Assembly: GCA_030704615.1 (NCBI GenBank)
Contig: CM060734.1
Location: 53,630,001 to 53,694,000, forward strand
Direction: 5' to 3'
DNA: 64,000 nucleotides
Origin: Takakia lepidozioides
Lineage: Eukaryota; Plantae; Bryophyta
The notes under the pieces are model-generated. The model was not told the DNA's origin, did not search any database, and saw nothing but the letters and a program-made list of their open reading frames with translations. Positions 2,452 through 64,000 of the stretch are shown here, piece by piece; the stretch's first letter is position 1, and the number at the start of each line of letters is the position of its first letter. The position numbers were made by a program, and so were the translations under genes.

Positions 2452-5400
2452 ATGGCGCAACCGCTGGCCACCATGGACGAGGAGGCGCTGAAGAAGAACA
2501 CCGACTGTGTGTATTTTCTGGCGTCCCCACTGACTTGCAAGAAGGTATGTATGTTCGGACCTTATTTAGGTCTTGTGCTCTGTGTCTTGAAAATGTGATT
2601 ATAGCATTTTTACCTTGCAGACAGAAGTCTAGACTTGTGCTTGCTCGTTGAAATCCGTTTAGGGTTTTCTCTAAGAATGATTCTGTTTCATGATTCGCAA
2701 TCCGTTCGCGAAGTTCTCGAGTGGCCAACGGCTTAGTTGTGAAGTTCCCGCGGAGGGGAGAGCAAGTCTACCCTACCGTTTTGCTGTTGATCATCTGATA
2801 ACAGGCTGTATGAAATGGCCAGACAAGGATTGAAGTATGTTGTTGCGGTTCTCGGCATTTATGTTCTTGTTTGCTCTATGGTGCAGGGTAATGATTGTGA
2901 ATTCAGGCATAGCGAGAGTGCCAGGATCAACCCCAGGGACTGCTGGTATTGGTTGGGCGGCAAATGTCTGATGCCCGACTGTCCCTTTCGTCACCCGGTA
3001 GGTTTGGTCACAGCCTTTTGCACCTCCGCACGGGTATCTGTCTGGCTGTGTTTGGAAAGATTTGAGAATGCTTCTCTTTCCATAATCTTTGTTTGCAAGT
3101 CTTGGAGACTCTACTGAAGGGTGCTAGCTGTCTTCTTGTTTGGAGATGGTCTGGTTGGAGTGTTTGGGGGTAATACTTTCTGTATTACATACTTCACACT
3201 TTCTTCCTTTTTGTGATGGTTGAATTGGTAATTGTTCTGAGATAAGCTCAACATTGACTGGCATGATTGTAGCATCTTCATGGGTTAACCCCCATTGTCC
3301 ATTGTGTGGGGAACTTAATACAGACGTACATAATACAATGACCAAATTGCTGACTCTTTTTGTGGCTCTATCAGCCTTTAGAAGGCAGGCCAGCAGCAGG
3401 AACGGCAGGGGTTGGGCCACCTGTTCCAGGAGCTGCAGGTGTAAACAAATCGAGGACCCCCTGCTTCTTTTTTTCACAAGGATATTGTGCTAAAGGAGAT
3501 AAATGTCCCTACATGCATGGTACTACTTCCCCAGCACCAGGTTTACAGCAAGCACCCACCCATTCTCAGAGGTCTGTCAGAGCCGGTGGGGCAGAGTCAA
3601 ATGACAAGAAAACTGGGAGTGGAGCTGGTAACGGCGATGTTGTTTTGAAGCCGGCCTCAGTGGAGGCCTCTACAGATGCCCCCAACACAACCCTTGAAGC
3701 CAGGCGAGCAGCACATGGGGTTGGCAGGGGAACCTTACAAGTTAGCCCTAGGAAGGAAGGCCGAGCTGGAGGAGCATTCCTGCAGAATGGTGTAGTGAAA
3801 GGGAGGACAGATGGGCCACCAGCATTGAATAGTGCAGTGCCAGGTGGCAGCAGTCGGTTGCGTATACGGCAGGGGCAGCCTGGAGATGATCGGCTACAAA
3901 ATGGAATGGAGTCTGAGGAGTGGTGGGAGGAGTCCTCGCCTGGGTTCGATGTCCTGGTAGATGCAGGGCCAGATCGGTCACGGTACAATGAAGACCCAGA
4001 TTTTGGAGGCAGCCATGATAGTGGCTTGGAGCTCGGAAGGGTGGGCCCTGGTCAAAGAAGAGGCAGAGGCATGCATACTGCAGATGACATGGAGCAGTAT
4101 GACTATGAGTACGCAGGTTGTTTTGACCAGTTGGCGTATGATTCCGGTGGACAGTACAACCGTGGGGGCTATGAAGCCTACGAGCAGCAAGGCGGCCATG
4201 GCTATGACCACGCATCTGCATATGACCAAATGGGTCATCCGCGCGGTGTTGCATATGGAGACAGGATGAATGAGGAAATGTATGTAAGAGACAGAGAAAG
4301 GATGATGTCGAACAGGGATGGGGAAGGTCGACCTGGTAATAATCAACGAGGTTCTCGGATGTTGAAGCGTCACAGGGCGGATGGCCCACCACAGCATGTT
4401 CTGGACAACCATTCACGTAGGCAACGGACAGAGTTCTCAGACGAGTACCCATCCCATGGACGGGTACAGGATGATTCTCAAAAGTTGCATGAGCAGCACT
4501 TGCGACAGCAGCTATTTGTCCAGCAGCAAGGCATCAGTAAGTCCAATAGTGGCAATTTGCGGCGATCGACCGAACGATCCGCTGGGGAATCCGGTGGGGT
4601 TGCCCGTCGGGCATTACTGGATATGAAAGAGGAGCATGTGGGACCTCCAGTGGAGAGAACGACCACCAAGAACTTGCTGAAGGGGCGTGGCGCTTTTGGA
4701 GAGGTGCCTGGGATTGGCACCAAGGGTGACCATGAGCAGGCTGGGCATAGAGGAGAAAGTGGGCGGTCCATGACGAGGGCTGGAGATGGAGAGCGATTTG
4801 GCCTTATTAGGAGGGACAATGATCGGGGCAGGGGAGCTCCAAAGGGTGTAGAAGGTATGCCAGAGACAGAGGTGAGGGGTTTGGGAGGATCTTCGGCAGG
4901 TATGCGGCGCAGCGAGGTGAAGAAAGAACAGCCCTCAAGTTTTGCAGGACCGAAAAGCTTGGCACAGATACTAGCAGAAAAGAAGAAAGGAGGACCTGTG
5001 GAGGATAGTTTAAAAGTGGGAGAGATGCCTGTTGATACTGGGAAAGCCGTTCAGTCAAGAGAAAGAGAGGTGCATGATGAGGCAATGGACTTGCCCAGTG
5101 AATCCACTGGGTTGGTTGCAGAGTCTGGTGGTTATGAAGGCAGCAAGGGTGCTCCATCTGTAAAAAATCAAAATCAAGTGGCGTCTGCATTGACGTCAGA
5201 GCATTTTCCTGGTGAAGGTGCATTGGAGGAAAGAAAGATAAGCTTGGGCAGGGTGGTAGGTCAGGAGCCTACAAAGGTTGCAAGTTTTGTTGGGCCTAAA
5301 TCATTGAGTGCCATTCTACAAGCAAAGCGCAAAGCAGATTTAGAGACTGCAGAAAGCCCAGAGGAAACTACGCGGGGCCACATCCGCAGACGGGTTACTC

Positions 5401-5867
5401 AGAGGGTAGGTGACAGTGTGGTTGTAAAAGCATCTGCAGGTACAGGCATGGACGTAGAAGATGGAGAACTTTTGCCAGATGCTGAACTTGCCAGGACTAC
5501 AGATTATTCGGAGCATCCGACTCTCATGCACCAAACCTCCAATCAAACGGTTGATAAGTCGAGTAGTGATGCTACAATTGTGGCCACAAGGGAGAGCAAG
5601 AGGTTACAGGACGATGATGGTGAGGGCACATTGCTGACTTCAGGGGATAACAATGGGGATGTTGATTATGCAATAAGTGTGGCAAGGAGTGCGGAGGAAC
5701 TGGACCCCATTGACACAGTCGGGGAAGAACCTGAGCACATAGAGACTGCTGGGTATGAGGCAGATACAGGGGACAAGGATATTTCAGAGCCCGAAGAAGA
5801 TGATGAGGAGTATGATGAGGAGGAGGATGATGATTTTGCGAAGAAACTGGGTGGTTTCTTCTCTTAA
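2452..5867 (+). CDS. CCCH zinc-finger protein (C3H17/ZC3H11-like), 3 coding exons: 2452-2544, 2887-2997, 3375-5867
   Basis: Exons read KKNTDCVYFLASPLTCKK | GNDCEFRHSESARINPRDCWYWLGGKCLMPDCPFRHP | PLEG...TPCFFFSQGYCAKGDKCPYMHG, giving three CCCH fingers. GT-AG junctions are in frame. Two F(A/V)GPKSL..IL..K motifs and an acidic C-terminus DDDFAKKLGGFFS are present. Confidence 0.9.
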
Positions 5868-16818: not shown

Positions 16819-19411
16819 CCCCCACTTAGATAGTGAGTCACGTTCTAGAGTTAAGCTGAATGCTATTCTCTAGGTTTCTACTATGTAACCTAAATCTTAC
16901 ACTTCGCACAAGGTGGCCAGTCTTGAAACAAAAAACAAGTCTTGGTTAATCAGTTGTAAAGAAAATAAATATAGAGCAGCTCCCATTGTAGAGATCAAGT
17001 AGCAATAAGACCAAGTCTAAGAGCACAATATTCATGCTTTAACTTGGTAAGAGATTTAGTAAATATGTCTGCAACATTCTCATCAGTGTTGCAGTATTCC
17101 AACTTCACCAATCCTCGTGTGATCACCTTCCGTATATAGTGATACTGGATTTCGATATGCTTCGTTCTTGCATGGAATTTATGATCATATGACAGAGCAA
17201 TACAACTTTGATTGTCGCATTTGAGAATTGTTGCCGTTGATTGTACTTGTCCAACATCACTTAATAGCTGTATGATCCATACAACATCTTTCACAGCTTT
17301 TGTAGCTGCTTTATACTCTACCTCTGTGATTGACAAGGCTATAGTGGGTTGGCGTTTACTACTCCAACTAACAGCCCCACCTCCAAGTAAATAAGTGTAG
17401 CCAGTTGTGGATTTCCGACTGTCCGGCTCACCAGCCCAGTCTGCATCACAAAGGCCTACCAGAGTAGAAGCATTTCTTCCTTGTGCAGAATATTGAAGAG
17501 CACTTGTCGCTGTACATTTCACGTATCTAAAGATACGCTTGACTGCTTACCAATGTACTGGTCCCGGATTTGCGGAATGCTGAGACACTACCTCCACTGC
17601 AAACGCTAAATCTAGACGTGTACAGACCATGGCATAGGTCAAAGAACCAATAGATTGTGGATATGGTACATGACGCATTCCACTTCGTCAGGTGTGTGAG
17701 GTGCTTGATCTTTGGAAAGTTTCAGATTGACCTCCAAAGGTGAAGCCATAGGTTTGCAATGAGTCATACCAAAGTGCTCAAGCTTACCCTTGACATACCT
17801 GAGTTAGGATCACCGAACCAGCTTGTCGATCACGAAGAACTTGTATGCCCAACAAGTAATGAACAGCAATTCACTCTTGGTACGAAGCATAAGTGAGACA
17901 TTGTCGCAAACCAAAATTGCATCATCCACATATAACGCAAGTATTAGAAATGAACCAGAATGTCCACGCACATAGACATTACAATCTGCTCCTGTGCGAT
18001 GAAAGCCCACTTGGAGAAGGTAAGAGTCAATTCTCTCGTACCACGCACGCGGAGCTTATTTAAGTCCATATAGACTTCGAAGGAGACGACGGACTTGGAA
18101 TTGACAGGGATACTAATTGGAAACACGTCAAGCAATCCTTCAAAGCATCCAGCCTCCACTTCCGCTAATACGTGCTTCTACTCAAGATCGGCTTCACACT
18201 GAACTCTGGAAGCCTTCACATGCAAGTTCTCTCAAAAGGCCCTTGGGCCTTGTCAATTTGATAAGTAGTCTTGATGTTCATGGCTTGCCTTAGCCTTCTG
18301 GTTGACGCATGTAGATCTCCTCTTTGAGGTGGCCATGTAAGAATGCGGTCTTGACATCTAGTTGGTCAACCTCCCAATTGTGAATAGGCGCCAGTGCCAA
18401 AAAAACTCGAATGGATGTGATCTTGACCACAAGAGAAAATGTAACTGTGGAATCAAGACCTGCAACTTGAGAGTACCCTTTGGCTACAAGTCGAGCTTTA
18501 TAACGCTCAACCGTGCCATCAGAATTCAACTTAAGTTTAAAAACCCACTTGCAGTTCACCGGTTTATGGCCATCGGATAGATCAGCTAACGCCCAAGTAT
18601 TATTCTTCATTAAGGACTGAAACTCAGAAGCAATGGCAGCTTGCCAATGTGGAGCATCAGGCCTTGTGAGAGCTTCATGATAAGTCAAGGGTTCGGTCAT
18701 CATACTAGACTTAGATGGACGCTCGTGAAAATGAAGATATTTGGGATTAGGTTTGACTCTACGACCAAATCTGGTAACTTGTGGTTGAGTACCAAATGTA
18801 AAACCAGAGAGTGCAGGGAACGGAGGACCAGTGGTAGTTGGAAGTGCATTTGGGACAGAGGGCTGAAGCTCAGCAATAGGTAGTGTGTCATAAGAGAATA
18901 AAGGATTATTATATGACATACGACACTGTAATGGAGGCTCTGTAGGAGAGGAAGATCCAGGATAGGTGGAGGCATTAGATCTATGATTATCAATTGGGCT
19001 GTCATATCTCTATCTTCCCAATGGACGATGGAACCTACACCAGTACCTACACCAGTCCCTGGTGGATTTGTTACTGTTCCGCCTAGGGAAGTACTTGAGC
19101 TAGGTTTTATTTCAGTACCTATTATTAAATCCCAGAGTCTTTCTTTAAAAAAAAAAGAGGATAATCTAATCTTCCAGGTTTCATAGTTAGAACCATCTAA
19201 TTTCTCTACGGTTCTTTGATCGGACGAGGAGGATGCCATTGTGGCGCTGATTAAGATTTACTCTTCCTATAGAATTTTAGGACCCTATGTTTTATGAAGA
19301 CATTATACATTTTCTATGGTTCAAAAAACTCATAGAATGTTAAGGTCAATTTGAAACAAGGAGTCCCATCCCATCGGATGGTTCTATATTATCTATAGAG
19401 GCCTGATACCA

Positions 19412-49208: not shown

Positions 49209-52172
49209 TCATTGACATATTGTCAAGTCATGTGCAACAAGCCGAAAGCCAGCACCACCTTGGAAGTCGTAGACATCAAGTCCACATACCACATCTACCC
49301 TACACCCTGAAGGTACCTTGCTCCGGAATACCACTGGATCCACTGCATCCAGGCCCAGACTTCTTGTCCCTGCTGCATTTTTGTGAGAAAATCTGGTGGT
49401 GTAGCAAGCAGATTCTCCTGTGCCTGTGGTACCAATCCTGTAATCAGCCCCCATTCAAACCAATTGTATTTTAGATCCATCTTCGCCAAATTATGGAAAA
49501 TGATGGTTGATGCATATTAAGCCAGAAGGATTTATCCGCAACCTTATGCACAGTAAACAAGTGCTATACACAACCAGTCCCAGCAGATGTGAAACCAGCT
49601 GACACAATCTAGCATGAGGAGAGAAAAGTACCTGAGGCGAATTGCATGAACTCCACCCTCCCTCCAGATGGTTGTCGGCCTCCAGAGAGAGTGCCCACCC
49701 ATTGCTGCATACTTGCTGTGAACAAGAGTTTCCAATGTAAGAAGTAAGCTGCAAATTTCCTGAGATGGCTCGATGACAACGTTGAACGTTGGTTTGCCCA
49801 TCTTGTCAAAAGCATAGGTCTCACTGACACTGTATCTCATTGTGGCACTGGGCTCATACAATCGCAAAGGTAGCCCATCATACAACACTATTGGAATCTG
49901 CTGACCCCATGAGCTTGGTCCCTCTTCCACATTAAGTAAGCATGCACGGACCTCCTTTGGTGACAAGCATGCATGCCCCCTGTTTCTGTCTTCACTGGAT
50001 GACAGCAGAGTCCTCTCCAGCATTCTAGTCTCTGCTATTGTTGCACTCCAAGAGGACTTACAACCATGGAGGATACAGCTGCGTGCTGCTACCCACTCCT
50101 CCGATGTTGATGTGGTTGAAGAAGATACACTTTGAAATACTTGGCAGGGTGCATCTCCACCATCACTGCCTCTATCCAGGCTTTTCACAAAGCACGAGTC
50201 TTCTTGTTCGATTGGTCCACACCCATTTCCTTCCAAGTCCCACCCACACCCATTGATAGCGTCACCAAGCTCAGACCCCATCACCTTGACAACCTCTTCC
50301 AGTCTTTCAGATAATGCATGATGATCAAAGACATCCTTTGATTCAGAAAAATCAACAGGAATAGTGTCCTGATTACTGTTCATAAACTCATTGATGAGGG
50401 ACTGCATGGATGCCATATTTGTTACGGAGTCTTGAGCCATTACAGCAGAATGAATTGCATTATCAGATAAGCACAAATCAGAGAGAGAAACTGTTGTTTG
50501 AGGATCTTCCAGTAACACATGAGAGCTGCTTGCAGACCGGGGCTTTGAAAAAAGTTGGCCTGAAGAAGAAACACCGGGCATAGCCAGACTTGCACCAGTG
50601 AAGATAGCTGGAAACTTAGCCTCCTGCAGAGCAAGAGTCAATTTAGAAACTTGTACATAGGCACTCTCCCATCAAACCCCTGCAAGATTTATGACATATC
50701 TTGCTAGACATTGTGTGGGAACCTCAACAACCTCTACAGTCGCCATGCCCCTCCCACCCGTCACTTTAAGTGCAGAAAAGCTTCACTACGAATCGAAGTA
50801 GAGGTAGAAGAATAGACAAATGGAAACAAACAAGCACAAGGACAGGTAGAAGTTGCTTACAAGGAACAACAAGGTGGCACATGATCTCAAAATTTGAAAA
50901 TTCATCCGTGCGTCTCCTATGCTCCTGTTTCACATGGCGGTTAAGGCAATGTGGGCCAAGTTACTGGACAGATATTGGCGCTGGGTGGAAAATAATCTTT
51001 ATTACCACTGGCTGCAAGTTGAGAGTACTGATGCTGCTGCCAAACATTCCACCTTCCCGAAAACATCTTGCTTGTGCAGACAAAGCACACTTTCTAGATG
51101 GTGAGTTCGTCACAAACACGTGTTTGTTATTTGTGCATATCTGGCCACCAAAGTCCCTGTTGCTTCATTTTACTTTATGGATCTGAGTATCATTCTAAAA
51201 GTGAGTCAATGGAAGCCATATTTGTCATGTGTCACTGCAAGCACTATGACTTGTGTGAGAAGGAAAATTGGTTCATGACTTTGCCTCGAGAATCAAATAT
51301 AATATAAGTGGATCCACATCCAAGTGTCAGTATCATGAGTCCTTCCCAGCTTGTTATCTGGCACTGTGACCCTTCCCTGTGAGGCCTCTACTGTCTTGTC
51401 AGGTGCTATCTTGGTGACGACAAGCCAAATAGAAACGTAGAAATGAAGCTAGAAATCCCACCCATACCTGTGTACCTGCTCTCCAAGGCCGCAGTAGGAG
51501 GCCAGACTATCCATCTGCAAATTACAACTCACATATTCAGCACAAAGCCCCGTTGATGAGCTGATGGCTTACCCGATGGTTCACACTTGGCAAAGGCTTT
51601 ACCTTCATATTACCAGCTCGATTTCCAAAAGTGGATTTCAGTAGGGGCAATGTATCTATCACTTGCACAGGCTCCGGAGCTGATTGCCCAACTTCAGCAA
51701 ACGCTTCTCGGATCCTCGGAATGTCAAACCTTAAGATGTTGTGCCCTGCCCACACTTGACCTGCACAAATCACATACCAACCGCACAACGGAAAGTCACT
51801 AAAACATTTTTCATCTAGGAAATTTCTACTCGTTGCCTGATATCACTCACCATATCTCTTGCTGCAACGGGCGCTCTGTTAAAGCAAGAGATACTGACCA
51901 TCGAGCAACTCGTATATTTTCCCAGCGATCTCTGAGAAAAGCGGTGCGTCCGCCACATCCTTCTTGGTAATGCCATTGCAACCCACGCTTCGACTCGAGA
52001 TGGCAGAGAGGGATGATGGCTGCACGAATGTGGAGTACGAATCCAGCTCCACTAAACCTTTCACAGACACCACTACGGCTCCAAACTCCAGAAGCTCAAA
52101 TTTCTGGCCTTTCTTTGTGGGTATTGTCGTCTCTACATCCAGGAACACGATTGCAACGGGCCCCATTTGCAT
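49209..52172 (-). CDS. NEN-type (NAC45/86-dependent exonuclease-domain) DEDDh 3'-5' exonuclease; 6 exons
   Basis: IVFLDVETTIP...LLEFGAVVV...SYSTFVQP..SVGCNGIT | VWAGHNILRFDIPRIREAF...IDTLPLL...FGNRAGNMK | MDSLASYCGLGEQVHR | SIGDARMNFQILRSCATLLFL | long middle exon | ...LDVYDFQGGAGFRLVAH. This architecture is characteristic of plant NEN1-4. Confidence 0.9.
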
Positions 52173-52259
52173 AGAGCTCGGCAGCGTGCAGCATCAACCA
52201 GCTGAATTCGTGAGCCTTTCTAAAAGCCCACCTCCCCTTCCTCCCCAAGAGAAGAAGAA

Positions 52260-52410
52260 GGACCCAATCCCGCGTATGACCCATACCTGCGGTTCGGCCG
52301 ACATGGATCGGTTCCTCAACGTGAGTATAAAAACCCACCGTTGTGCATCAGCGCGGAGAGGGTTTGCACCCTCACCCGCTCAGCGCGGACTGCCTGTTAC
52401 TATGGCAGTC
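52260..52410 (-). ncRNA. Candidate Fanzor omegaRNA scaffold (structured tract after the Fanzor stop codon)
   Basis: Consecutive hairpins on the minus strand: GACTGCC-9nt-GGCAGTC (52388-52410); GCGG.GAGGGT-GCAA-ACCCTC.CCGC (52353-52379); CAAC.GTGGGT-TTTTAT-ACTCAC-GTTG (52317-52343); a multi-stem including CCGC.GTATG-GGT-CATAC-GCGG (52260-52315). Position matches known Fanzor/TnpB omegaRNAs. Confidence 0.55.
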
Positions 52411-55400
52411 TTAATGAGATGTGTGGCCGGGCACGTCCCTCTCCGGCCTCTTCGCCCTGCAGAATGCCGGGTGGCGAGGCCGGGAGTCCCGCATTTCCAA
52501 GAACCGGTGCATGATGTTGTCCCAACCCAGCCTGCTATCGGACTACATGGAACCGAGACGCCAACGCAGCCGCGTATGAACTGCGACGCCCAATCTTTCC
52601 CGGGAATCGGCACTGGGGCATGGTCGCCATCATTTCGCTGCAACCGCAACATAGTTGGCTAGTTCGAAACTCGTCCACCATCAACATCTCGCTTGTCTTC
52701 TCCCATATCTTCTTCTGCAACTTGGAGGTTGGTGTGCTCTCCGTCCCAGGGCTGTTGTGCGCGAAAGAGGCGTTCCCAAAGGCCACCACTGTCGTCGGGT
52801 CGTTTACCGTCCGACTCACCTCCCTCGCAAGCGTCGCGTAGGCCCGTTCCGTCTTTATCCATGTCGCCCACCTCAACTCTCATTTGTTCACCACGTAGAA
52901 CTCGTTCAGTGCCCGGAGATGTGTCAGCACCGACGCCGCGTATAGGCTATACCCCGCTACAGTCGCCACCTTAGCAGAGATGGTGTTGACCCTCGAATTG
53001 AACTGCGTCATGGCTTCGTTCCTGGCCATCCACCTCTTCGTCAGCTTGGCCTGCCGCCGGTATCCGCACATGGTGTAGAACCGCGCCTTGCTGCAACGGA
53101 TCACTTGGAACCGGTCCCCTTGGCCCACCCACGGCTCGTTCAGCGCGGCCTCTGCTTTGGGCGAGTACACCACTCCCGTGTAGAGGTATTTTCGGCCCGG
53201 GTCGATGGACACGACTCGTTTAGGCAATGGCACGTGGGTGTGCGGAGTCGGTTTGGGCATTTCCTTTTTCTTGCGTCCTTTCACCTGCGGAAAAACAAGA
53301 CCAACGTCCGTTTAAAAAAACGTCAGTCTACAAGATGGTTTCCCTCAACTAAAGAGACGACATGCATGTCCACTCCCAATCAAACTACCTCAGAAACAAT
53401 ATTAAGCTTTTACTCCAATACATTTCCCAAACCAAAAGAGAAGCTCTCGCGTATCCAACGCCTTAAATGGGGTCTTTCACTAAACAAGGTTGTGGCGCCT
53501 GGAGGCACTCGACCACACATGTTTGCAGGGGGTATATACGGTCATAAACCATTCTGTTGTAGACATCGACCCCAACAGATCATGTTGCCATGTTTCTAAC
53601 CTTCAGCTAAAACCGATTTCGATTCATAGAAACGTCAGATAAATAACTCATCTAAGGCGACGAGCCTCGCTTTCGGGTTCAAGGAGGGTGGGAATATCGC
53701 CTTCCCGCACATGGCCCTTGACATTGCACATAATAAGACGATGTTGGTCGTCCAACAAGTTCACCTGCATTTGCGTCACGAGCCGGTACGCCCGATCACT
53801 AAAGACAATAAAAAACAAACATGGCGAATGAAGCAGTTGTCTTACTCTGGCTGTGACTGCAGGTTGGCGTCGGGCGCGAGCCCGACAACACACTGACCGC
53901 AACCCCGTCAGTGGTTATAAAATTCTGAAACTTGAGTCCTCTTCCAGGTCGTTCAAACTTCCGGTCGATTTTGAAAAAGTTGTTCCATCCCAACAAAATC
54001 CATAATTGGTAAAACGAAATGAACACGAACTTGGGGCATATGTCATCAATGGACACGACGACGATGGGAGCACGAGTGACCTCCCGTCGTTCCGCACGTG
54101 CGGCATACACCTGATGACCGCTGGTCACTGATTCCTCCTCTAGTACCCCACTTGCTTCCCCCTCCCCGAAAAACACAAGCAGGATTCGGGGGCAGACTTA
54201 CAATCTCCACAGTTCGTCGTCGCTCATGCTTTCTAGACCAGGATGATTCTGCACTATCGGTGTTGCCTTTGTCGCAAACGACCGCAAGATGGTGTTGGTG
54301 ATGGCTAACTGGACTGGCCTGACGCGCTTTTGCGGTAGGAGTGAGAAGAGCCGGAGCCCTTTGAGCTTCCTCGAATATGTCGGGCGCCGTCTCGGATGCA
54401 GCCTGTTGGCGTTGGCCATATCCTCGTGGTATGCACTGAGGTCTTGCAGGATTTTCCATGTTGTTGTGAGGTAGTCCTGCTTCTTTAGGTCGAGCGGCAA
54501 CAGTTCTCCAGGAAGAAGGTTGGTTATGATGAGGTGGCATATGTGGACCAGACTCTCAATCTGTCCGACATCCATATCTCGGAGCGTGGTGTACCGCGCC
54601 TTGCACGAAAGAATCGACGCCTCCGCGGATCCGTGCTCGTGGGCAAGTGTGGCCTTAATCACCAAGGAGACGGCGGCGCGGATGCTTTTGGTGTGGAAGG
54701 AAACATTGGATTTTGACACCATCATTCTTGCCCATTTCCGGAGGCAGGGAACCAAATTGACGGCGAGGGAGGTCTTGAAGTTGTCATGCATCTCATCGGC
54801 TAGCATGTCGGTGAGGTGAGTCCAGTGAGGCTTGCGCATCAGTTTTGTGTATCCTACCGGCCGGAGCAACTTGAACCGAACGTATGATGTGATGATTTCG
54901 GGGTCCTTGTTTTGGAGGAGCCTCCCGTCGTTCAGGACGGCACACACTGCCCGGTTGAAAAACGCCGACTTGCGTTGTAAGCCGTCGGGGAGGGCCAATC
55001 CTTCTGCAAGACATTTGATGATATGGTGCGACGCGAACAGAGATGCTTCCACAGCCAGCGGCGTCAATTCCTTGACAGTTTCCTCCACAACTTTTCTCAT
55101 GGCGTCCCTCAGGCAGAAGCTTTTGCTGAAGCTGACCCCCTTTTGACGGCGCGCTGCTGTTTCCTCTGGCTCAAAGCCGTCGATGGCACGGCTGGCTGAG
55201 GACCTGCTAGGCCGTTGGATATCGTGTTGCGCTCGCCGGGTGGAAGAACTGCAATTCTGATGGCCTTTGGTGGCAGGGTGTCGTTGATGACCGGTTGACG
55301 AAACACCGTTTCTTAGAGGAATCGGTCTGTGTAGTCTTGGACGCGGCTGGACGTTTCCTCCCGGCCCGCGGAACACCGGCTTCTGTCGGACTGGACAGAT

Positions 55401-55480
55401 TGGGACTGTCTTCAATCTTTTGTTGTTTCTTTCCTAGTAACTTCCGTCTTGATAATTTGCTGCAATCCACTAACGTCAAT
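52411..55480 (-). pseudogene. Fanzor1 (eukaryotic TnpB-like RNA-guided RuvC nuclease), intron-containing, inactivated
   Basis: N-terminal helical region (SKSFCLRDAMRKVVEETVKELTPLAVEASLFASHHI), [20 protein letters not shown], RuvC-I RVVSIDPGRK, VVAFGNASF, RuvC-II+ZnF VDEFRTSQLCCGC, RuvC-III WNRDANAA (inverted, 52515-52571), and C-terminal NIMHRFLEMRDSRPRHPAFCR. Lesions include an in-frame TGA at 52880-52882 and a frameshift near 53885. The 5' boundary is approximate. Confidence 0.88.
53648..53799 (-). pseudogene. RPS28: Ribosomal protein eS28 (RPS28) gene fragment inside the Fanzor intron
   Basis: VIGRTGS, a small frameshifting deletion, then [43 protein letters not shown]. This matches the eS28 C-terminus (…[25 protein letters not shown]). 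Confidence 0.9.
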
Positions 55481-55481
55481 G

Positions 55482-55703
55482 AAGCATCGTGTGGCGGCAG
55501 ATTTGGAAATTGATCCGCATCGTCGGATTCGGTGGGACATCTCCGTGTACAATGCCGTTCTAGTGTCGTTGAATTCGGTGTTTCTGTCCGACGTAGGTGT
55601 GAATGCGTTGATCGTTGTTTGCGTGGCGATGTTGGAAAGCCAAGTACAAACGTCCACGGAGCATCGCGTGACGGCGGATTTTGAAATTGATCCGCGTCGT
55701 CGG
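55482..55703. repeat. ~44-bp imperfect direct repeat upstream of the Fanzor ORF
   Basis: AGCATCGTGTGGCGGCAGATTTGGAAATTGATCCGCATCGTCGG (~55482-55525) versus AGCATCGCGTGACGGCGGATTTTGAAATTGATCCGCGTCGTCGG (~55660-55703). Confidence 0.75.
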
Positions 55704-57399
55704 TTGTGTCGTTGTACTTTTGTTGTCTTTGGTGTTATTGTCAGACGTTGGATGCACACGGTCGTTTCCCAGCTCCTCAGTTTATTGTTGGCTGAACACA
55801 ACAGTCACTTTTTCTCGTTACTAATAATATGTATATTTTTAGATTTTTTTTTGAATATATATATATATATTCCCTGCTCCGGGGGTAGGGTGAATTATTA
55901 ATGATAAATATTTGTCTTATTATTTTATATAATAAAATGTTTAATTTATTTCGACGGTTTACCACAGGGTGGAATTCCATTTTGCCTCGTCGTCCAGAGG
56001 CGCTTCGTCAATCTAATATCTATGTGTTCAGCCGTTGAGTTATTCGCTCAGTGTCTCTATTTCTGGATATTCGCGATGGTTTCCACAGGCTCTCCTCCTC
56101 GTCCTCTCCGTTCTGCTGCAGATGGCCTGGTGCAATTGACATAGGGTCATACATGTTAAGGCATTTGCTGAATTATTTCAAACTTAAGATTGTTTTTTTA
56201 CTTTGAAGGGTTTGGGGTGGGGGGGGGGGGGTCAACTACTAGGCTATGAACTATGTTCAAATTGTTGAAGGTGTCCTGATCTCGAGTAGATGATTGGAAG
56301 TCTATGTGCCAAGTCCATGAACCAGTTCTATGCGCCGTCCGTGGAGCGGCTCGGACAATGACGACGACATTGTTTCTTATGATGTCGTTTCGAGGATAGT
56401 CACATGTATTTATAAGCAGCAATTTTTTTTTTTCGGAGGGAGTGATCATCATCGTTTTGTCGTTACAAACCGTCGGATGCGGCGTCTACCTCGGTCCTTT
56501 GGTGGACGCCTCAGTCCATCGGTGGACAGTGGACCGTTGGAGGTAGACAATCGTTTTCCATCCTCCAAGTTTATCGTTGGCAGATTTCTTGTTATTAATA
56601 TTAATAGTTTTTTTTCAAATCATTTCTATGAATTTCTTTCCTTACCTGGTGCATGAGGTAAGTCATTGGAATGTGGCATAGGGTGAAATTGACGGTCATT
56701 TCTTTAGCCATTGAGGTTATCATTGGCTGAACACGACGGTTTCCATTTTCCTCTTTTAATAGTTAATATGGACTTCAGCCTGTTGAGCGAATTCTACACA
56801 CCCATCCTTTAGCTATCCGAGGCAGATACTCAAGAGTGGAGGTGCTGGAATATAATGAGTGGTTGTTCAAAACAGTCAAACATGACCTGCGTCTAAAGTT
56901 TCATGGGGGTGCCATGAATCTGCTCATTCATGAGTTCATGATAAGTTGATTTATCAATGAATTTGGGTATCCTAGTTATAGATTACTTATGTAATCTCTT
57001 TAGTTCATGTTCTTTTTACTATCTAAGCATGTCACAGCTTCACTCAGGTCTTTCTACGCAGTATGGGAGTCGGAGTTTGATTCGCTTGATGTAATATTCA
57101 TGGTGTACAATTAGGTTGTAGCCTCTATGGCCTCAGCTTGGCCTCCTATTTCTACTCCGATACTTTGTTTTCTCATATCTCATCTGTAGGGGCTGCTCTC
57201 AGGCTCACTGTTGATGTCACGCTCCTCCACCCTAGCCCAGCCGGTGCTTCCTATTTCCTGCTTCTACTGTATGCCATCATGTAAATGATCCATTTTCTTG
57301 TCCCTTTGTTGCTTTTATACCCCTGCGATCCGTCCTAATCGCCGTTAACTACCTTGACTCTAACCGTTATGGATCCCTTTCTTGGTTCTGATTCAACTA

Positions 57400-58350
57400 T
57401 TGCGCTCATGGTCCTGTTACCCGTCATGATTGTGGGTTCCCACTCATGGCCTACGTCATCATGGTCCACGTTCCCAGTCATGGTTGGCATTCCCGCTCAT
57501 GGCCCGCTCATGGTCGGCGTTCCTAGTCGTACATGATCGTGTGTTCCCACTCATGGTGGGCATTCCCGGTCATGGAACGCTAATGGTGTTCATGGTTTCT
57601 CAGCCATGACCTAATCCTCATGGTCACAAAATCATGTTGGCTCATGGTCGTTGTGCCATGAAGATTCATGGCCGTAGTACCATGACCGCTCAATTTCAAC
57701 CTCTCAGTTAGGGAATTCTTCTAGCTATACAATGGTCAATTTTTGCCTTTCAAATAAACAATTGTAGAATGATCAATTTGATCTTTTCAAATGGACAATT
57801 CTAGATTGCACAAATATTAATTTCAGCTGTTAAAATTGGTAATTCTAGCCCCCCTAATGGCCAATTCCAACCCTTGAACTACAATGTAAAATGCAATTCA
57901 AGCCCTTCAAATTGGCAATTCCAGTCCCTAAAATGGCCAACTCCGGCCGCCCCTTAAAGTGTAATTTGAGCCCTGAAATTTGTCAATTCCAGCCCCTGAA
58001 ATGGCAATTTCAGCTCCTGAAATTGGCAGTTCCAGCCCCTCAAATTGCAAGTATAGCCCCTGAAATTGGCAATTCGAGCCCATTCGAATTTTAATTCCAG
58101 CCCCTCAAATGGCCAATTCAAGCCCCTCAAATCGTATTTCCAACCCCTGAAATCAATGTAATTTACTAAGTTCGAGCCCCCTCAAATTGCAATTCTAGCC
58201 CCTAAATTGGGAAATTCCTGCCTTTGAAATGACAATTGTAGCCCCTAAATTGGGTAATTCTAGGAACCCTTCAAACTAATATTTCTAATTTAAATGAGGG
58301 AATGGTATTCTCAAAGTTAATAATGTACATTTGGAAGAGCCCTTGAAATG
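57400..58350. repeat. Two adjacent degenerate short-period repeat tracts (TCATGG-rich; then AATTCCAGCCCCT.AAATTGGC ~21-22 bp)
   Basis: TCATG(G/A) recurs through 57400-57690, and CAATTC.AGCCCCT.AAAT recurs more than 10 times through 57830-58270. Confidence 0.75.
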
Positions 58351-59449: not shown

Positions 59450-62400
59450 GTTTGGCGAGACTGCAGTTTGTTCTTTAGTTAGTTAAGATGGAAGGCACAT
59501 TTCTTCAGCTCCAGATGCAAGAACTTTGTACATCTACCGCCCAATTGCAAGCTGATCAGTCTCAGGATCTTGGCAACGCTCTCCACGATTTGCAACAACA
59601 AATTTCAGAGTTAAAGGAGTCGAACAATGGATCTTCAACCATACGAGTCCCTACTGCAACAGCTCCTACTGCAACGGTTCATCTTCAACAGATTACGAGA
59701 GAACCAAAGATCAGCATGCCCGAGAAATTTGATAGGACGCGATCAAGATTTCGCGATTTTGTTCAACAAGTATGACTGTTCCTACGACTACATCCACAAC
59801 GCTACCCCGATGAAGGTATTCAAGTGGGATTCGTGGACACCCTTCTATCAGGCACTGCCCTATCTTGGTTTGCACCGCTACTAGAAAAAAAATCGCATTT
59901 ACTATATAATTTTGAAGCATTCATGTCCGAGTTCACTGCAACGTTTAGAGAAATTGATAGAGAGAGAGTTGCAGAAACAAAGATGCGAAATCTTCGACAA
60001 GGAGCACGTCATGCTTCCATTTATGCTGCCGAATTTCGACAACTTGCATGCGACCTCGACTGGAATGAGAAGAGCCTCATTAGTCAGTTTCGATGTGGAC
60101 TAAAGGATGATGTAAAAGATTTGTTGCTAACAATGTCAAACGTGAGCACACTGAGTGAATTCATCACCCAAGTCATTGCATGCGATAATCGTTTGTTTGA
60201 AAGACGTCAAGAGAAGCGATCTGGATGGTCGACGACGCATCATATCACTGCTCCTACGACACCAAATACAACGATCCATCAGACATCCAATAGTGATCTT
60301 ATGCAGATTGATGCTGTCCGATTCAAACCATTGACGCCACAACAAAAACAAAGACGGCGCTCGAATGGATTATGCCTCTATTGCGGAGAAGAAGATCATA
60401 TAGCATTAAACTGCCCCAACAAGAAAAGATTCAAAGCTCGGGGCACAACTCAAGTGTTCGATACGAGGAGGTCGGAAAACGACGATGTCCAGTCACAATA
60501 GGGACCATGCGGCTGGACACTACAAATTTCTTACCGAAAAAAATGTCTCTTTCTACCTCCAGACCCTGCACCTTGCTTCACAATTCCAGTATAAATCAGA
60601 GTGCAAAATCGAGATATCGTTGTAGAAGCACTTTTGGACTCGGGAGCTTCAGCTTGTTTTATGGACAAAAACTTTGCGAAGCAACACAATTTAACGCTCG
60701 TAAAGAATAAACTCTCGGCCCCCGTTGAAGTCATCGATGGACGACCGTTAGCATCAGGAAATGTGGACCATGAAACTCGACCACTTGAAGTGAAGCTTAA
60801 AGATCAAGCATCACATATTGTTTTCAATGTCATCCAGTCTCCAACGAATCTTGTGATCCTTGGATTTCCCTGGTTCGTACTTCACAATCTCGACATCGAC
60901 TGGCGATCGCGAAAAATTTCTGCAAGACAAAAATGTAGAAATATCAAAGGTATTCAACCCATATTCCTTGGAGCTAAAGCTTTCATGAGAGCTACCAAAA
61001 AAGAGGCGGCATTTGCACTTTATGCGACTCCGATCAAGACCACAACAGACAAAGGTATTTCAACATTACCCACTCAATATCAAGATTTCAAAGATGTCTT
61101 CGAGAAGAAAAATGCAGACATGTTGCCAGAACATCGACCTTATGACTGTGCAATTGAGTTACAAGAAGGAGCCCAACCACCATTCGACCCAATCTATAAC
61201 TTATCCCAGACGGAGTTGGCTGCATTACGTGAATACATTGATGAAAATTTGTCGAAGCACTTCATCCGACATTCAAAATCACCCGCGGGGGCACCTATTT
61301 TGTTTGTGAAAAAGAAAGACGGATCATTACGCATGTGTGTCGACTATCGCGGTCTCAACAAAATCACAATCAAGAATCGTTATCCGTTGCCGCTGATTTA
61401 TGGGCTTCTCGACCAGCTGGGACGAGCGAAGATTTTCACCAAAATCGACTTGAGAGGAGCCTATAACCTTGTACGGATAAAAGAAGGAGACGAATGGAAA
61501 ACAGCTTTTCGAACAAGGTATGGACATTTTGAATACAGTGTTATGCCTTTCGGTCTTACCAATGCTCCAGCAATTTTCCAACATATGATTAATGACATCT
61601 TTCGAGAATTTTTAGATGACTTTGTAGTCATCTATTTGGACGACATTTTGATATTTTCACAGAATGAAGAAGAACATGGCCGCCATGTACGCCTTGTCTT
61701 TGATAAATTAACAGAAAGAGGACTATATGCCAAGTTGGAGAAATGTCTTTTTCATCAATCTGAGGTTGAATTTCTGGGCTACATTATTTCCGACAAATGC
61801 GTCTTTATGGATCAGAAGAAAATACAAACCATCATCGAGTGGATTAAACCAACTTCGATCCGAGATGTACAATGTTTTCTGGGCTTTGCAAATTTCTATA
61901 GAATCTTCATCAATGACTACTCCAAAATTGCTGCACCGTTGACACGACTCACAGGGAATGACAAATTTGTATGGGACGAGAGGCTGACTAGGCATTTGAA
62001 AGGCTGAAGCAGGCATTTACAACGGCTCCAATACTGGTACATGCAGACCCATCTAAACCATTCTTCTTAGAATCAGATGCATCGGACTTTGCACTTGGCG
62101 CGGTACTCTCGCAATACGATACAGATGGCCGACTCCACCCTGTTGGTTTTCATTCTCGCAAATTTTCCGCTGCGGAGATCAATTATGAAATGCATAACAA
62201 ATAACTTCTAGCGATTATCGATGTTTTTGAGGAGTGACGACATCTATTGGAGGGAGCTAAACATCAGGTCACTGTCTATACCGATCACAAAAACCTCGAA
62301 TATTTTATGAGTGCTCGTGTTTTGAATCGACGTCAAGCAAGATGGAGTATGTCACTAGCAAGGTTTGATTTTGTTATTACCTACCGTCCCGGGCATCTTC

Positions 62401-63862
62401 AAGGAAAATCAGATGCTCTTTCTCGACGATCGTATCTTGCGCCAAAAGAAGGGGATGCAGTTTTTGACCAACAAAAATTCATTATCTTGAAACCAGCAAA
62501 TCTCCAATTGAATATGTTATCCATGTCCACCTATGACGATGCAGAGATCATAAAGGAGATTCATGAAGCACTGAAGAACGACCATTTTGCTACGACACTA
62601 CGAAGTCAACTAAATCAACCTCGAGACAACCCACATGTTACAAACGACTTCGAATCCAAAGATGGCTTACTTTACTTCAAGGGACTTTTCTATGTACCTC
62701 CAGGACCTACACGACTTCGAATCTTCAAAACATGTCATGATCTTCCGGCTGCAGGACATTTCGGCTTCAACAAAACATTGAAGTTGATATCCAGGGACTA
62801 TTAGTGGCCGCAAATGTGGAAACTCGTGAAAGAATTCATAAAATCTTGTGACACGTGTGCTAGAGCGAAGGGACCACGACATCGACCTTACGGCCTTCTT
62901 CAACCATTACCCATTCCCGAGGGTCCATGGTCGTCCGTGTCTATGAACTTTATTACGGACCTTCCAATTCCAAGACCACCGATTCAATCCTTGTATTGTA
63001 GATCGTTTTACGAAGATGACACATTTCATTTCATGTAATAAGACGGTTACCGGCGAGGAAAAGGCAAGACTCTTCATCAATAATATCTACCGCATTCATG
63101 GACTCTCGAAGGACATCGTATCTGATCGAGGACCACAGTTCATATCAAATTTCTGGAGGGGATTATTTCACATATTGGATACTAAGATCAACCTCTCTAC
63201 AGCTAATCATCCACAGACTGATGGTCAAACCGAACGTGTAAACCGGATTTTGGAGCATATCTTCGCTGTACGATAAATTATCACCAAGATAATTGGACGG
63301 ACCTTCTGTCATTGCTGAGTTTGCCTACAACAACACTATACATTCTTCGACCAAGCAAACTCCGTTTTTCTCCAATTATGATCATCATCTTCGAGCAAAC
63401 CATTTCCACATGAAGACTGTTGGAAGCCCTGTTGTAGAAAACCTTGCTACTCATCTAGCTATGATTCACAAGGAGCTTACATCCCACCTCGCAGAAGCTC
63501 AAAAACAATACAAGGAGTATGCAGATCAACGTCACCAACTCCAACCCCAGTTCAAGGTCGGAGATCGTGTGTGGCTTCTTCGACGAGACATACAAACCTC
63601 GCGACCATCAAGGAAGTTGGATTATCAACGCCTGGGACCATTCAAAATTATTCGACAAATAAATCCGGTCAGTTTTCGGCTTGAACTCCCACGAAGTATG
63701 CGCATCCATCCATTCTTTCATGTTTCATTATTGGAGTTGTATCATCCATCAAATATTCCAGGGAGAGTCTCCGTACCACCTCCACCAGTCGAAGTCAATC
63801 AAGAACTTGAGTATGAAGTCGACGAAGTTCTAGACTCTCGCATCAAGTATAAACGTCTTGAA
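58823..63862 (+). mobile_element. Ty3/gypsy chromovirus (Tcn1-like) LTR retrotransposon, decayed and truncated in the chromodomain
   Basis: 5' LTR TGTCA...TGACA at 58823-59449. gag (EPKISMPEKFD, MQIDAVR, CLYCGEEDHIALNC); protease ALLDSGAS; RT ([20 protein letters not shown]); RNase H ([18 protein letters not shown]); integrase ([10 protein letters not shown]...CDTC, SDRGPQF, HPQTDGQTERVN, GPF); chromodomain start EYEVDEVLDSR. Several stops and frameshifts. Confidence 0.95.
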
Positions 63863-64000
63863 GTGGATAGTACTAAATGAAGTAGATCGATCAAGTTCGT
63901 TGCCCTCCCCATCTCCCCATCGTCTGCGTGTGGGTAACTAGATCCAGCGCTCTCCAACATCTCAACGCCTTGCGTTCTTGAGACTCGATGTGTGTTGTTT

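Follow-up and report, generated by a model that had tools for sequence, protein, structure and literature searches.

A Fanzor1 gene in a decayed state lies on the minus strand of the 64-kb stretch of DNA analysed here (the window); its open reading frames (ORFs) were located between positions 55415 and 52380 from the ORF list and by direct reading of the sequence. We put the probability of this assignment at about 0.88. Fanzor1 proteins are eukaryotic, transposon-borne descendants of TnpB with a single RuvC nuclease, and the 3' end of the protein's own element is transcribed into the guide RNA that directs this nuclease to DNA. To our knowledge, Fanzors are the sole RNA-guided DNA nucleases native to eukaryotes. 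The gene in the window adds a member to this known kind: it is genuine, it is dead, and it belongs to a small resident family. The first-pass annotation had drawn the locus as 52260-55480; the repeated element, however, stops at approximately 52317 and leaves 52260-52316 as flank. All homology, fold and motif searches were run exon by exon, while exons were joined only to check reading frames and to build the tree, in which the stop was replaced by X.

Identification of the gene as Fanzor1

By itself the locus gives faint database signals, namely Pfam PF07282 with an E-value of 0.002 (18.7 bits, under the Pfam cut-off of 26.3) and the Parasitella Fanzor1 with an E-value of 0.58, and the identification was therefore built through relatives. 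A phmmer search with the RuvC-I exon (134 amino acids, aa) against 1.84 billion representative sequences gave 26 hits, with identities of 28-41%, a best E-value of 2.5e-16 and, in many cases, lengths of 520-825 aa. The C-terminal TNB zinc ribbon PF07282 was found in all ten relatives scanned, at or over the Pfam cut-off in six of them (up to 35.3 bits) and slightly under it in the other four. The tblastn matches of the relatives are collinear with the window (55124-54201, 54011-53835, 53344-52616, 52464-52589 on the plus strand, and 52527-52456), reach E-values down to 4e-41, and leave the rest of the 64 kb without matches. Six pieces of the window tile the full length of nine full-length relatives (alignment A2). 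The proposed reassembly of split minus-strand ORFs into one protein holds in so far as the pieces tile onto Fanzor1 proteins, but two of these ORFs, 52880-53284 and 52535-52876, are not two exons; they are a single frame divided only by an in-frame TGA (52882-52880).

Comparison with known structures gave the type. A profile of the RuvC half, searched against the PDB, matched SpuFz1 of Spizellomyces punctatus (2.5e-19), PpFz1 of Parasitella parasitica (2.6e-19) and GtFz1 of Guillardia theta (2.6e-11), whereas the identical profile matched the mimivirus Fanzor2 L79 at 3.5e-4 and TnpB and Cas12f at 0.024. The matches to Fanzor2 and TnpB were limited to the zinc finger and RuvC-III. The exon-1 product (317 aa) was modelled with AlphaFold2 (AF2) from a 16-sequence alignment, with a predicted local distance difference test score (pLDDT) of 79.8 and a predicted template modelling score (pTM) of 0.73. 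Foldseek placed SpuFz1 and GtFz1 at the top ranks for this model with probabilities of 0.91-1.00, and VIA-align gave Z-scores of 14.4 for SpuFz1, 13.8 for GtFz1 and 12.5 for PpFz1, the following chain scoring 7.2; all six chains with Z of at least 8 are Fanzor1, with 248-262 residues aligned. The Fanzor1 type named in the first-pass annotation, together with the comparison to SpuFz1 suggested there, is borne out by both searches, in which Fanzor1 chains come first. A Fanzor2 or TnpB gene, for which a compact protein of about 400-500 aa with a TnpB-like N-terminus and an IS607 or IS200/605 setting would be expected, is not indicated: the N-terminal half is approximately 350 aa long, it has the Fanzor1 fold, and TnpA is absent.

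The motifs agree with this assignment. As had been described, the minus strand encodes FSLLP (54347-54333), SIDPG (Asp codon 53203-53201), VAFGNASF, DEFRTS (52675-52658), a CCxC pair reading CCGC (52651-52640) and RPRHPAFCR (52482-52456). It also encodes TTDGVAVSV, which contains the TDG motif of the WED domain (TDG codons 53912-53904). Such a set lies far above chance. The D, P and G columns of SIDPG are near-invariant in alignment A1, and the displaced RuvC-II glutamate is found in AFGNASF ... VDEFRTSQLCCGC (52675-52640). DEFRTS..C..C is invariant in alignment A4 and aligns with LDEYKTS of SpuFz1 and IDEFRTS of PpFz1, and the alignment of PpFz1 to the window exon covers GN.S...DEFRTS..C..C. 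Yoon et al. (2023; PMC10711439) name the DPG, TDG and DEFRTS signatures, all of which the window contains. The pattern [TS][TS]-x-x-Cys is that of Bao and Jurka (2013; PMC3627910), and the glutamate displaced to its side, with no Glu in the canonical position, is described both by Jiang et al. (2023; PMC10530073) and by Yoon et al. We infer the assignment of the catalytic glutamate from these papers. All residues of the C4 zinc finger and of the RuvC-III RD that follows it are encoded at the locus, with the second Cys pair and WNRDANAA inverted. The WNRDxNAA motif, which had been read in the minus-strand ORFs, is missing from them and is instead coded by the plus strand (WNRDANAAA, 52548-52574); the relatives match the inverted segment by tblastn in frame +3 (52464-52589, E-values of 2e-4 to 6e-4).

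Several searches were uninformative. Homologous-protein searches gave no match with the 405-aa ORF, and just five hits with profile A2, all close to its first row. Single exons found nothing in the PDB, or at best a match with an E-value of 0.58, and the NCBIfam scan of the locus returned noise only. A related-locus search of metagenome and viral contigs with a single 113-aa piece found no close relative, and an exact look-up of a 300-aa product found no record.

Parts of the gene and damage in this copy

All coding pieces lie on the minus strand save one. The exon-1 equivalent (54202-55151) encodes the N-terminal WED/REC part, holds FSLLP and ends in DDELWR; the relatives' tblastn matches to it span 55124-54201 with E-values to 9e-30, the piece tiles in alignment A2, and its stretch KGVSFSKSFCLRDA corresponds to VVKCGLTRFCRDA in the aligned relatives. 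Protein homology reaches upstream to approximately 55150. Farther upstream, a candidate basic N-terminus resembling a nuclear localization signal, GVPRAGRKRPAASK (55340-55389, minus strand), matches the N-terminus of relative P0016 weakly (E-value of 0.44). It is out of the exon-1 frame, which implies a frameshift or an extra upstream intron, and it may serve as a lead rather than a finding; a frameshift near the gene start is probable. The exon-2 equivalent (53846-53987), reading WNNFFKIDRKF and onwards, contains the TDG motif, is matched by tblastn at 54011/53987-53835 and tiles in alignment A2. The first half of exon 3 (52883-53277) encodes RuvC-I with DPG, followed by helices, as seen from the phmmer hits and from alignments A1 and A2.

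Exon 3 is then cut, on frame reading, by the in-frame TGA at 52880-52882 (VVNK*ELRW). Here a different copy, seen in a contig with a loose end at 52879, has VVNKRMRELRW and is net 6 nucleotides (nt) longer. The second half of exon 3 (52568-52879) encodes AFGNASF, DEFRTS and the first Cys pair CCGC, and after RRSSY the sequence is out of place. The adjoining 48-bp segment (52520-52567) is inverted, and its plus strand encodes the second Cys pair and RuvC-III, (C)PNPACYRTTWNRDAN, with the Asp at 52557-52559; half of the zinc finger and the RuvC-III aspartate are in this way moved to the opposite strand. The minus strand resumes at 52518 with the C-terminal tail NIMHRFLEMRDSRPRHPAFCR (52411-52518; TAA stop at 52413-52411), which is matched by tblastn at 52527-52456 and aligns with the relatives' NI....RP..F.R tail. 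A non-coding 3' tail with hairpins (52317-52410, minus strand) completes the element, the repeat end being at approximately 52317.

As to the inversion, one DNA contig links 52519 to 52567 on opposite strands, while two contigs run on past 52519 and give the gene-strand reading RDANAAVNIMHRF; RDANAAVNI is likewise read on the gene strand in other copies. The RDANAAVNIMHRF arrangement matches every relative, and hence the collinear order is ancestral. The 48-bp inversion is carried by the window copy, or by its assembly. Together with a second stop (TAA 54200-54198), which ends the frame within the GTAAGT donor considered below, and an ill-defined start, the TGA and the inverted RuvC-III make the locus a pseudogene of the family; the earlier description of this copy as dead was correct.

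Probable and possible introns

Two blocks separate the coding pieces. In tblastn the relatives pass from 53835/53847 to 53245/53218 with only approximately 7 residues between, and the segment 53278-53845 (minus strand), which we call intron 2, contains in-frame stops. Its splice signals are a GTAAGA donor and a pyrimidine tract, with one AG at 53286-53285 and a second at 53279-53278. The frame is open only with the AG at 53279-53278, whereas joining 53846 to 53284 breaks it. Read depth over 53845-53278 is at repeat level, which indicates that the segment is common to all copies, and it is probably an intron present in all of them.

The other block, of 216 nt (53988-54203, minus strand), has no counterpart in any relative: relative P0003 aligns through ...DELWR to 54204 and restarts at 53987. 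The block starts with GTAAGT (54201-54196) and is in frame, the TAA of the donor being its only in-frame stop. Either an intron or an old insertion could account for it. Short self-similarities inside it (D5, D8) were taken as chance. The splice signals listed in the first-pass annotation all exist (GTAAGT at 54201, GTAAGA at 53845 and TTTTCCGCAG with AG 53286-53285), but that acceptor is out of frame. The description of the gene as intron-containing accordingly stands as probable for intron 2, but not for the first block, which has no frame-keeping acceptor.

Copies of the family and residency in the host genome

Four DNA runs from one sample, together with two RNA-type runs, were mapped over 51000-56900. 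DNA depth is 80-410 over 52182-55136, and 42 (X1) and 64 (X4) in the flanks, which corresponds roughly to 2-6 family copies at an identity of at least 95%; over approximately 52317-55130 the contigs have 2-6 times the depth of the flanks. Contigs of single-copy depth span both edges of the element (331 nt, 52051-52381; 445 nt, 55097-55541). Other copies leave the window sequence at 52316 and continue into unlike flanks, which marks a sharp 3' end of the element.

The copies differ in their damage. One lacks the 85 nt of 52368-52452 and has CTC instead, which costs it the stop codon and a portion of the tail; reads show copies without the TGA and without the inversion, but also one in which a glutamine codon at 54479 has become a stop. 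Single-base coding differences among copies over 52489-55077 comprise seven synonymous and seven non-synonymous changes, the latter including the stop at 54479. This ratio is a weak hint of constraint during the divergence of the copies, many of the changes being CpG transitions.

Raised depth, edge-bridging contigs and variant copies, together with a transcribed and spliced host gene 145 bp away, point to a resident family rather than contamination, as had been proposed on first reading. Contamination and a chimeric join are ruled out, as far as the data of one sample allow.

The 3' tail

The 224 nt of 52297-52520 (minus strand) fold into several hairpins at -98.2 kcal/mol (z-score of -4.07; 0 of 200 shuffles as good). 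This structured tail sits at the place expected for the scaffold of a guide (omega) RNA and is a candidate for it. An Rfam scan of the tail gave no match, and a tRNA scan was also empty.

Relatives and known systems

The closest relatives (P0030/P0005, P0001 and P0002) are on giant-virus-like metagenome contigs; their identity to the window is 39-43% in the RuvC half and 31-32% in the N-terminal one. The relatives of giant-virus context are collinear with the window gene from approximately residue 33 to the last residue. The three closest relatives for which the context was read lie among dense intronless genes of giant-virus type: one on a 395-kb contig with an mRNA capping enzyme, eIF-1A and glycosyltransferases, the second with Erv1/Alr and the third with an intronless RNA polymerase Rpb1. 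These relatives are uninterrupted genes, whereas the gene in the window has approximately 780 extra bases in two blocks, is multi-copy and adjoins a spliced host gene. A pattern scan of JGI metagenomes gave 108 further relatives, none of which is more than 45% identical to the window.

Some metagenomic relatives are interrupted as well. In a multi-copy group from JAABU* contigs (L007, L013, L019, L024, L026), a gap of approximately 240-300 nt, often with a frame change, separates the first Cys pair from the second Cys pair and RuvC-III. Judged by these gaps, the genes look intron-bearing and would come from some eukaryote. The group (e.g. L007, L024, L026) falls in the same clade as the window (Shimodaira-Hasegawa-like approximate likelihood ratio test, SH-aLRT, 91) and is 41-44% identical to it over the DEFRTS region; it shares with the window gene the multi-copy state and intron-like gaps, but its gap falls within the zinc finger and parts one half from the other, a position at which the window gene is uninterrupted. 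On another, 55.6-kb metagenome contig (L004, 6239-9326) a Fanzor1 relative is present as three adjacent ORFs immediately downstream of a DDE_3 (Tc1/mariner-type) transposase ORF. A 758-aa Fanzor1-like protein (P0023; HZK61772.1) comes from a 2.3-kb contig labelled as an Anaerovoracaceae bacterium metagenome-assembled genome. The bacterial label is probably due to mis-binning; other 'prokaryotic Fanzor1-like' sequences have been judged mis-binned (Yoon et al., 2023; PMC10711439).

With the characterised proteins SpuFz1 (PDB 8GKH, 9CEU-9CEZ), PpFz1 (9CF0-3) and GtFz1 (9CER) the window gene has in common the RuvC-half profile, the N-terminal fold and the motifs GD/GN.S, DE[FY].TS..C..C, WNRD and RP..FSR, although N-terminal identity is only 12-16%. 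These three are intact, and DNA cutting has been demonstrated for them, while the window copy is broken.

Within the green lineage, Fanzor1 genes have been described from the streptophyte alga Klebsormidium nitens (KnFNuc, 5 copies) and from Chlamydomonas reinhardtii (CrFNuc, 6 copies); CrFNuc has introns and a non-coding RNA at the 3' end and rides Helitron2, and KnFNuc is intronless (PMC10530073). Both algal Fanzor1 proteins were tested by Jiang et al. (2023; PMC10530073), who also describe intron capture. Compared by description only, they resemble the family in the window in belonging to the green lineage and in being multi-copy. The window copy differs from CrFNuc in having no visible carrier transposon, and the hosts of KnFNuc and CrFNuc are algae, whereas the host of the window looks like a seedless land plant, to judge from a plant-like, ordinary eukaryotic setting of copia and gypsy elements and spliced genes. 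In the tree of Saito et al. (2023; PMC10432273) Fz1 is found in 'plants' (Chlorophyta, Streptophyta and Cryptophyceae colours) and in giant viruses, and no streptophyte species is named; Table 1 of Bao and Jurka (PMC3627910) includes no land plant. In the literature found, the green-lineage Fanzors described are algal (Chlamydomonas, Klebsormidium). In the library searched, no paper describing a bryophyte, lycophyte or fern Fanzor family was found, and supplementary species catalogues may already list one.

Origin and competing explanations

The explanation that we favour is that of a Fanzor1 gene which has decayed in this copy but still has every Fanzor1 part in order, from the WED/REC half through the TDG motif, RuvC-I with DPG, the displaced glutamate in DEFRTS, the C4 zinc finger and RuvC-III NRD.NAA to the RP..F.R tail and the structured 3' tail. 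On this account at least one intron (approximately 53845-53278) would have been gained after entry into a eukaryotic genome, intact members would be RNA-guided DNA cutters aiding the persistence of their element, and the lineage would have been exchanged with giant viruses, as the nearest relatives suggest, with no direction assigned. Such an exchange is plausible. A reading that goes further is less likely than not: a Fanzor1 lineage exchanged with giant viruses would live on, with introns and recent mobility, in the genome of a seedless land plant, and some copies elsewhere in that genome would be intact and make a working nuclease and their own guide RNA.

A number of observations weigh against the favoured explanation. 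In a quick maximum-likelihood tree the window is on a long branch in a polytomy; the clade around this polytomy (SH-aLRT 91) contains both the viral-context and the intron-split groups. Since the tree leaves the origin unsettled, a giant-virus origin is not claimed. No frame-keeping AG acceptor was found for the first block (54203-53988), intron 2 works only with the second AG, unless this dead copy has suffered an indel, and no spliced RNA over either block was seen in the RNA-type runs. In the same two runs RNA depth is zero over the Fanzor coding part, save one 60-nt paralog piece, and none was seen over 52379-52575. The search for terminal inverted repeats (TIRs) gave nothing above shuffles, no target-site duplication (TSD) was found in the window, and no transposase ORF is present within 4 kb upstream. 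Repeat-level depth ends near 55130, though protein homology and the possible N-terminus go further upstream. The DNA runs are from one sample of one study, probably the assembled sample itself, and give no independent exclusion of an assembly error at the inversion. As to the paralog piece, which speaks for a multi-copy family, a 347-nt contig from an RNA run matches only 54273-54332 (QKRVRPVQLAITNTILRSFA) at an identity of at least 95% and has diverged flanks; this suggests transcription of a Fanzor paralog of greater distance.

The best surviving alternative, though an improbable one, is an endogenous giant-virus fragment that was later duplicated, instead of a transposon moving in a plant genome. 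It would account for the giant-virus-like contigs of the three closest relatives of known context and for the lack of TIR, TSD and transposase at the locus. The repeated unit, however, is just approximately 2.8 kb, with the Fanzor gene as its only content; its 3' end is sharp, with different flanks beyond it in the copies; and several copies with an identity of at least 95% are in different parts of the genome. The flanks contain no viral genes but a host gene on one side and retrotransposons farther off, and at least one probable intron is common to all copies.

Far less probable is a Fanzor gene that the host has domesticated and that has kept a function, perhaps in binding RNA or in supplying regulatory RNA. 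The copy variants (7 synonymous : 7 non-synonymous) include fewer non-synonymous changes than neutrally expected, and the 3' end of the element is within the transcript of the neighbouring gene; the variant count is small and CpG-biased, however, two stop codons interrupt the coding part, an inversion runs through its catalytic centre, RNA depth over it is zero in both RNA-type runs, and the family is multi-copy with variable damage, including the stop at 54479. Contamination by fungal, algal or viral DNA, or a chimeric assembly join, is just as remote, for while the best-known Fanzor1 genes come from fungi, protists, algae and giant viruses, and the G+C content of the locus (50-56%) exceeds that of the flanks (approximately 45%), its depth is a small multiple of the host single-copy depth in all four runs, single-copy contigs cross both edges, and spliced RNA contigs of the host gene run 58 nt into the end of the element.

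Neighbouring genes and other features

The gene next to the element (51000-52172, minus strand), called NEN on first reading, has an RNase_T exonuclease domain (PF00929, E-values of 5e-13 and 2e-6). RNA-type contigs skip 51515-51602 and 51757-51894, which on the minus strand are bounded by GT..AG. The ordinary gene that had been said to adjoin the element is spliced and transcribed. These contigs stop at 52374, within the element 3' end (52317-52374), and hence the 5' untranslated region of the host gene, and perhaps its transcription start, is within element sequence. A homologous-protein search with the 365-aa ORF of this gene gave no match, and a protein-atlas search with the host exon gave generic exonuclease clusters only, with no taxonomy.

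Elsewhere the window contains an open frame of 835 aa that begins with a CCCH zinc finger (3360-5864), a fragment of a copia-type reverse transcriptase (18293-18919), and a gypsy-type element with pieces of gag, protease, reverse transcriptase, RNase H and integrase (59824-63877). Just upstream of the Fanzor gene are two 58-nt direct repeats (55469-55526 and 55646-55703), which are 84% identical, 177 nt apart and beyond the stretch that other copies share at high identity. At 57893-58153 approximately 12 degenerate copies of a 22-nt unit form a tandem array, which can alternatively be read with a 43-nt period.

Implications

If the host is a land plant, the family would widen the host range of Fanzor1. 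It would also document a gene that passed between giant viruses and plants and finished as an element with several copies in a genome, and it would offer a place to seek a nuclease pre-adapted to plant nuclei. The value of the dead copy in the window lies in what it may lead to, namely the family, copies that are possibly intact, and exchange between viruses and plants.

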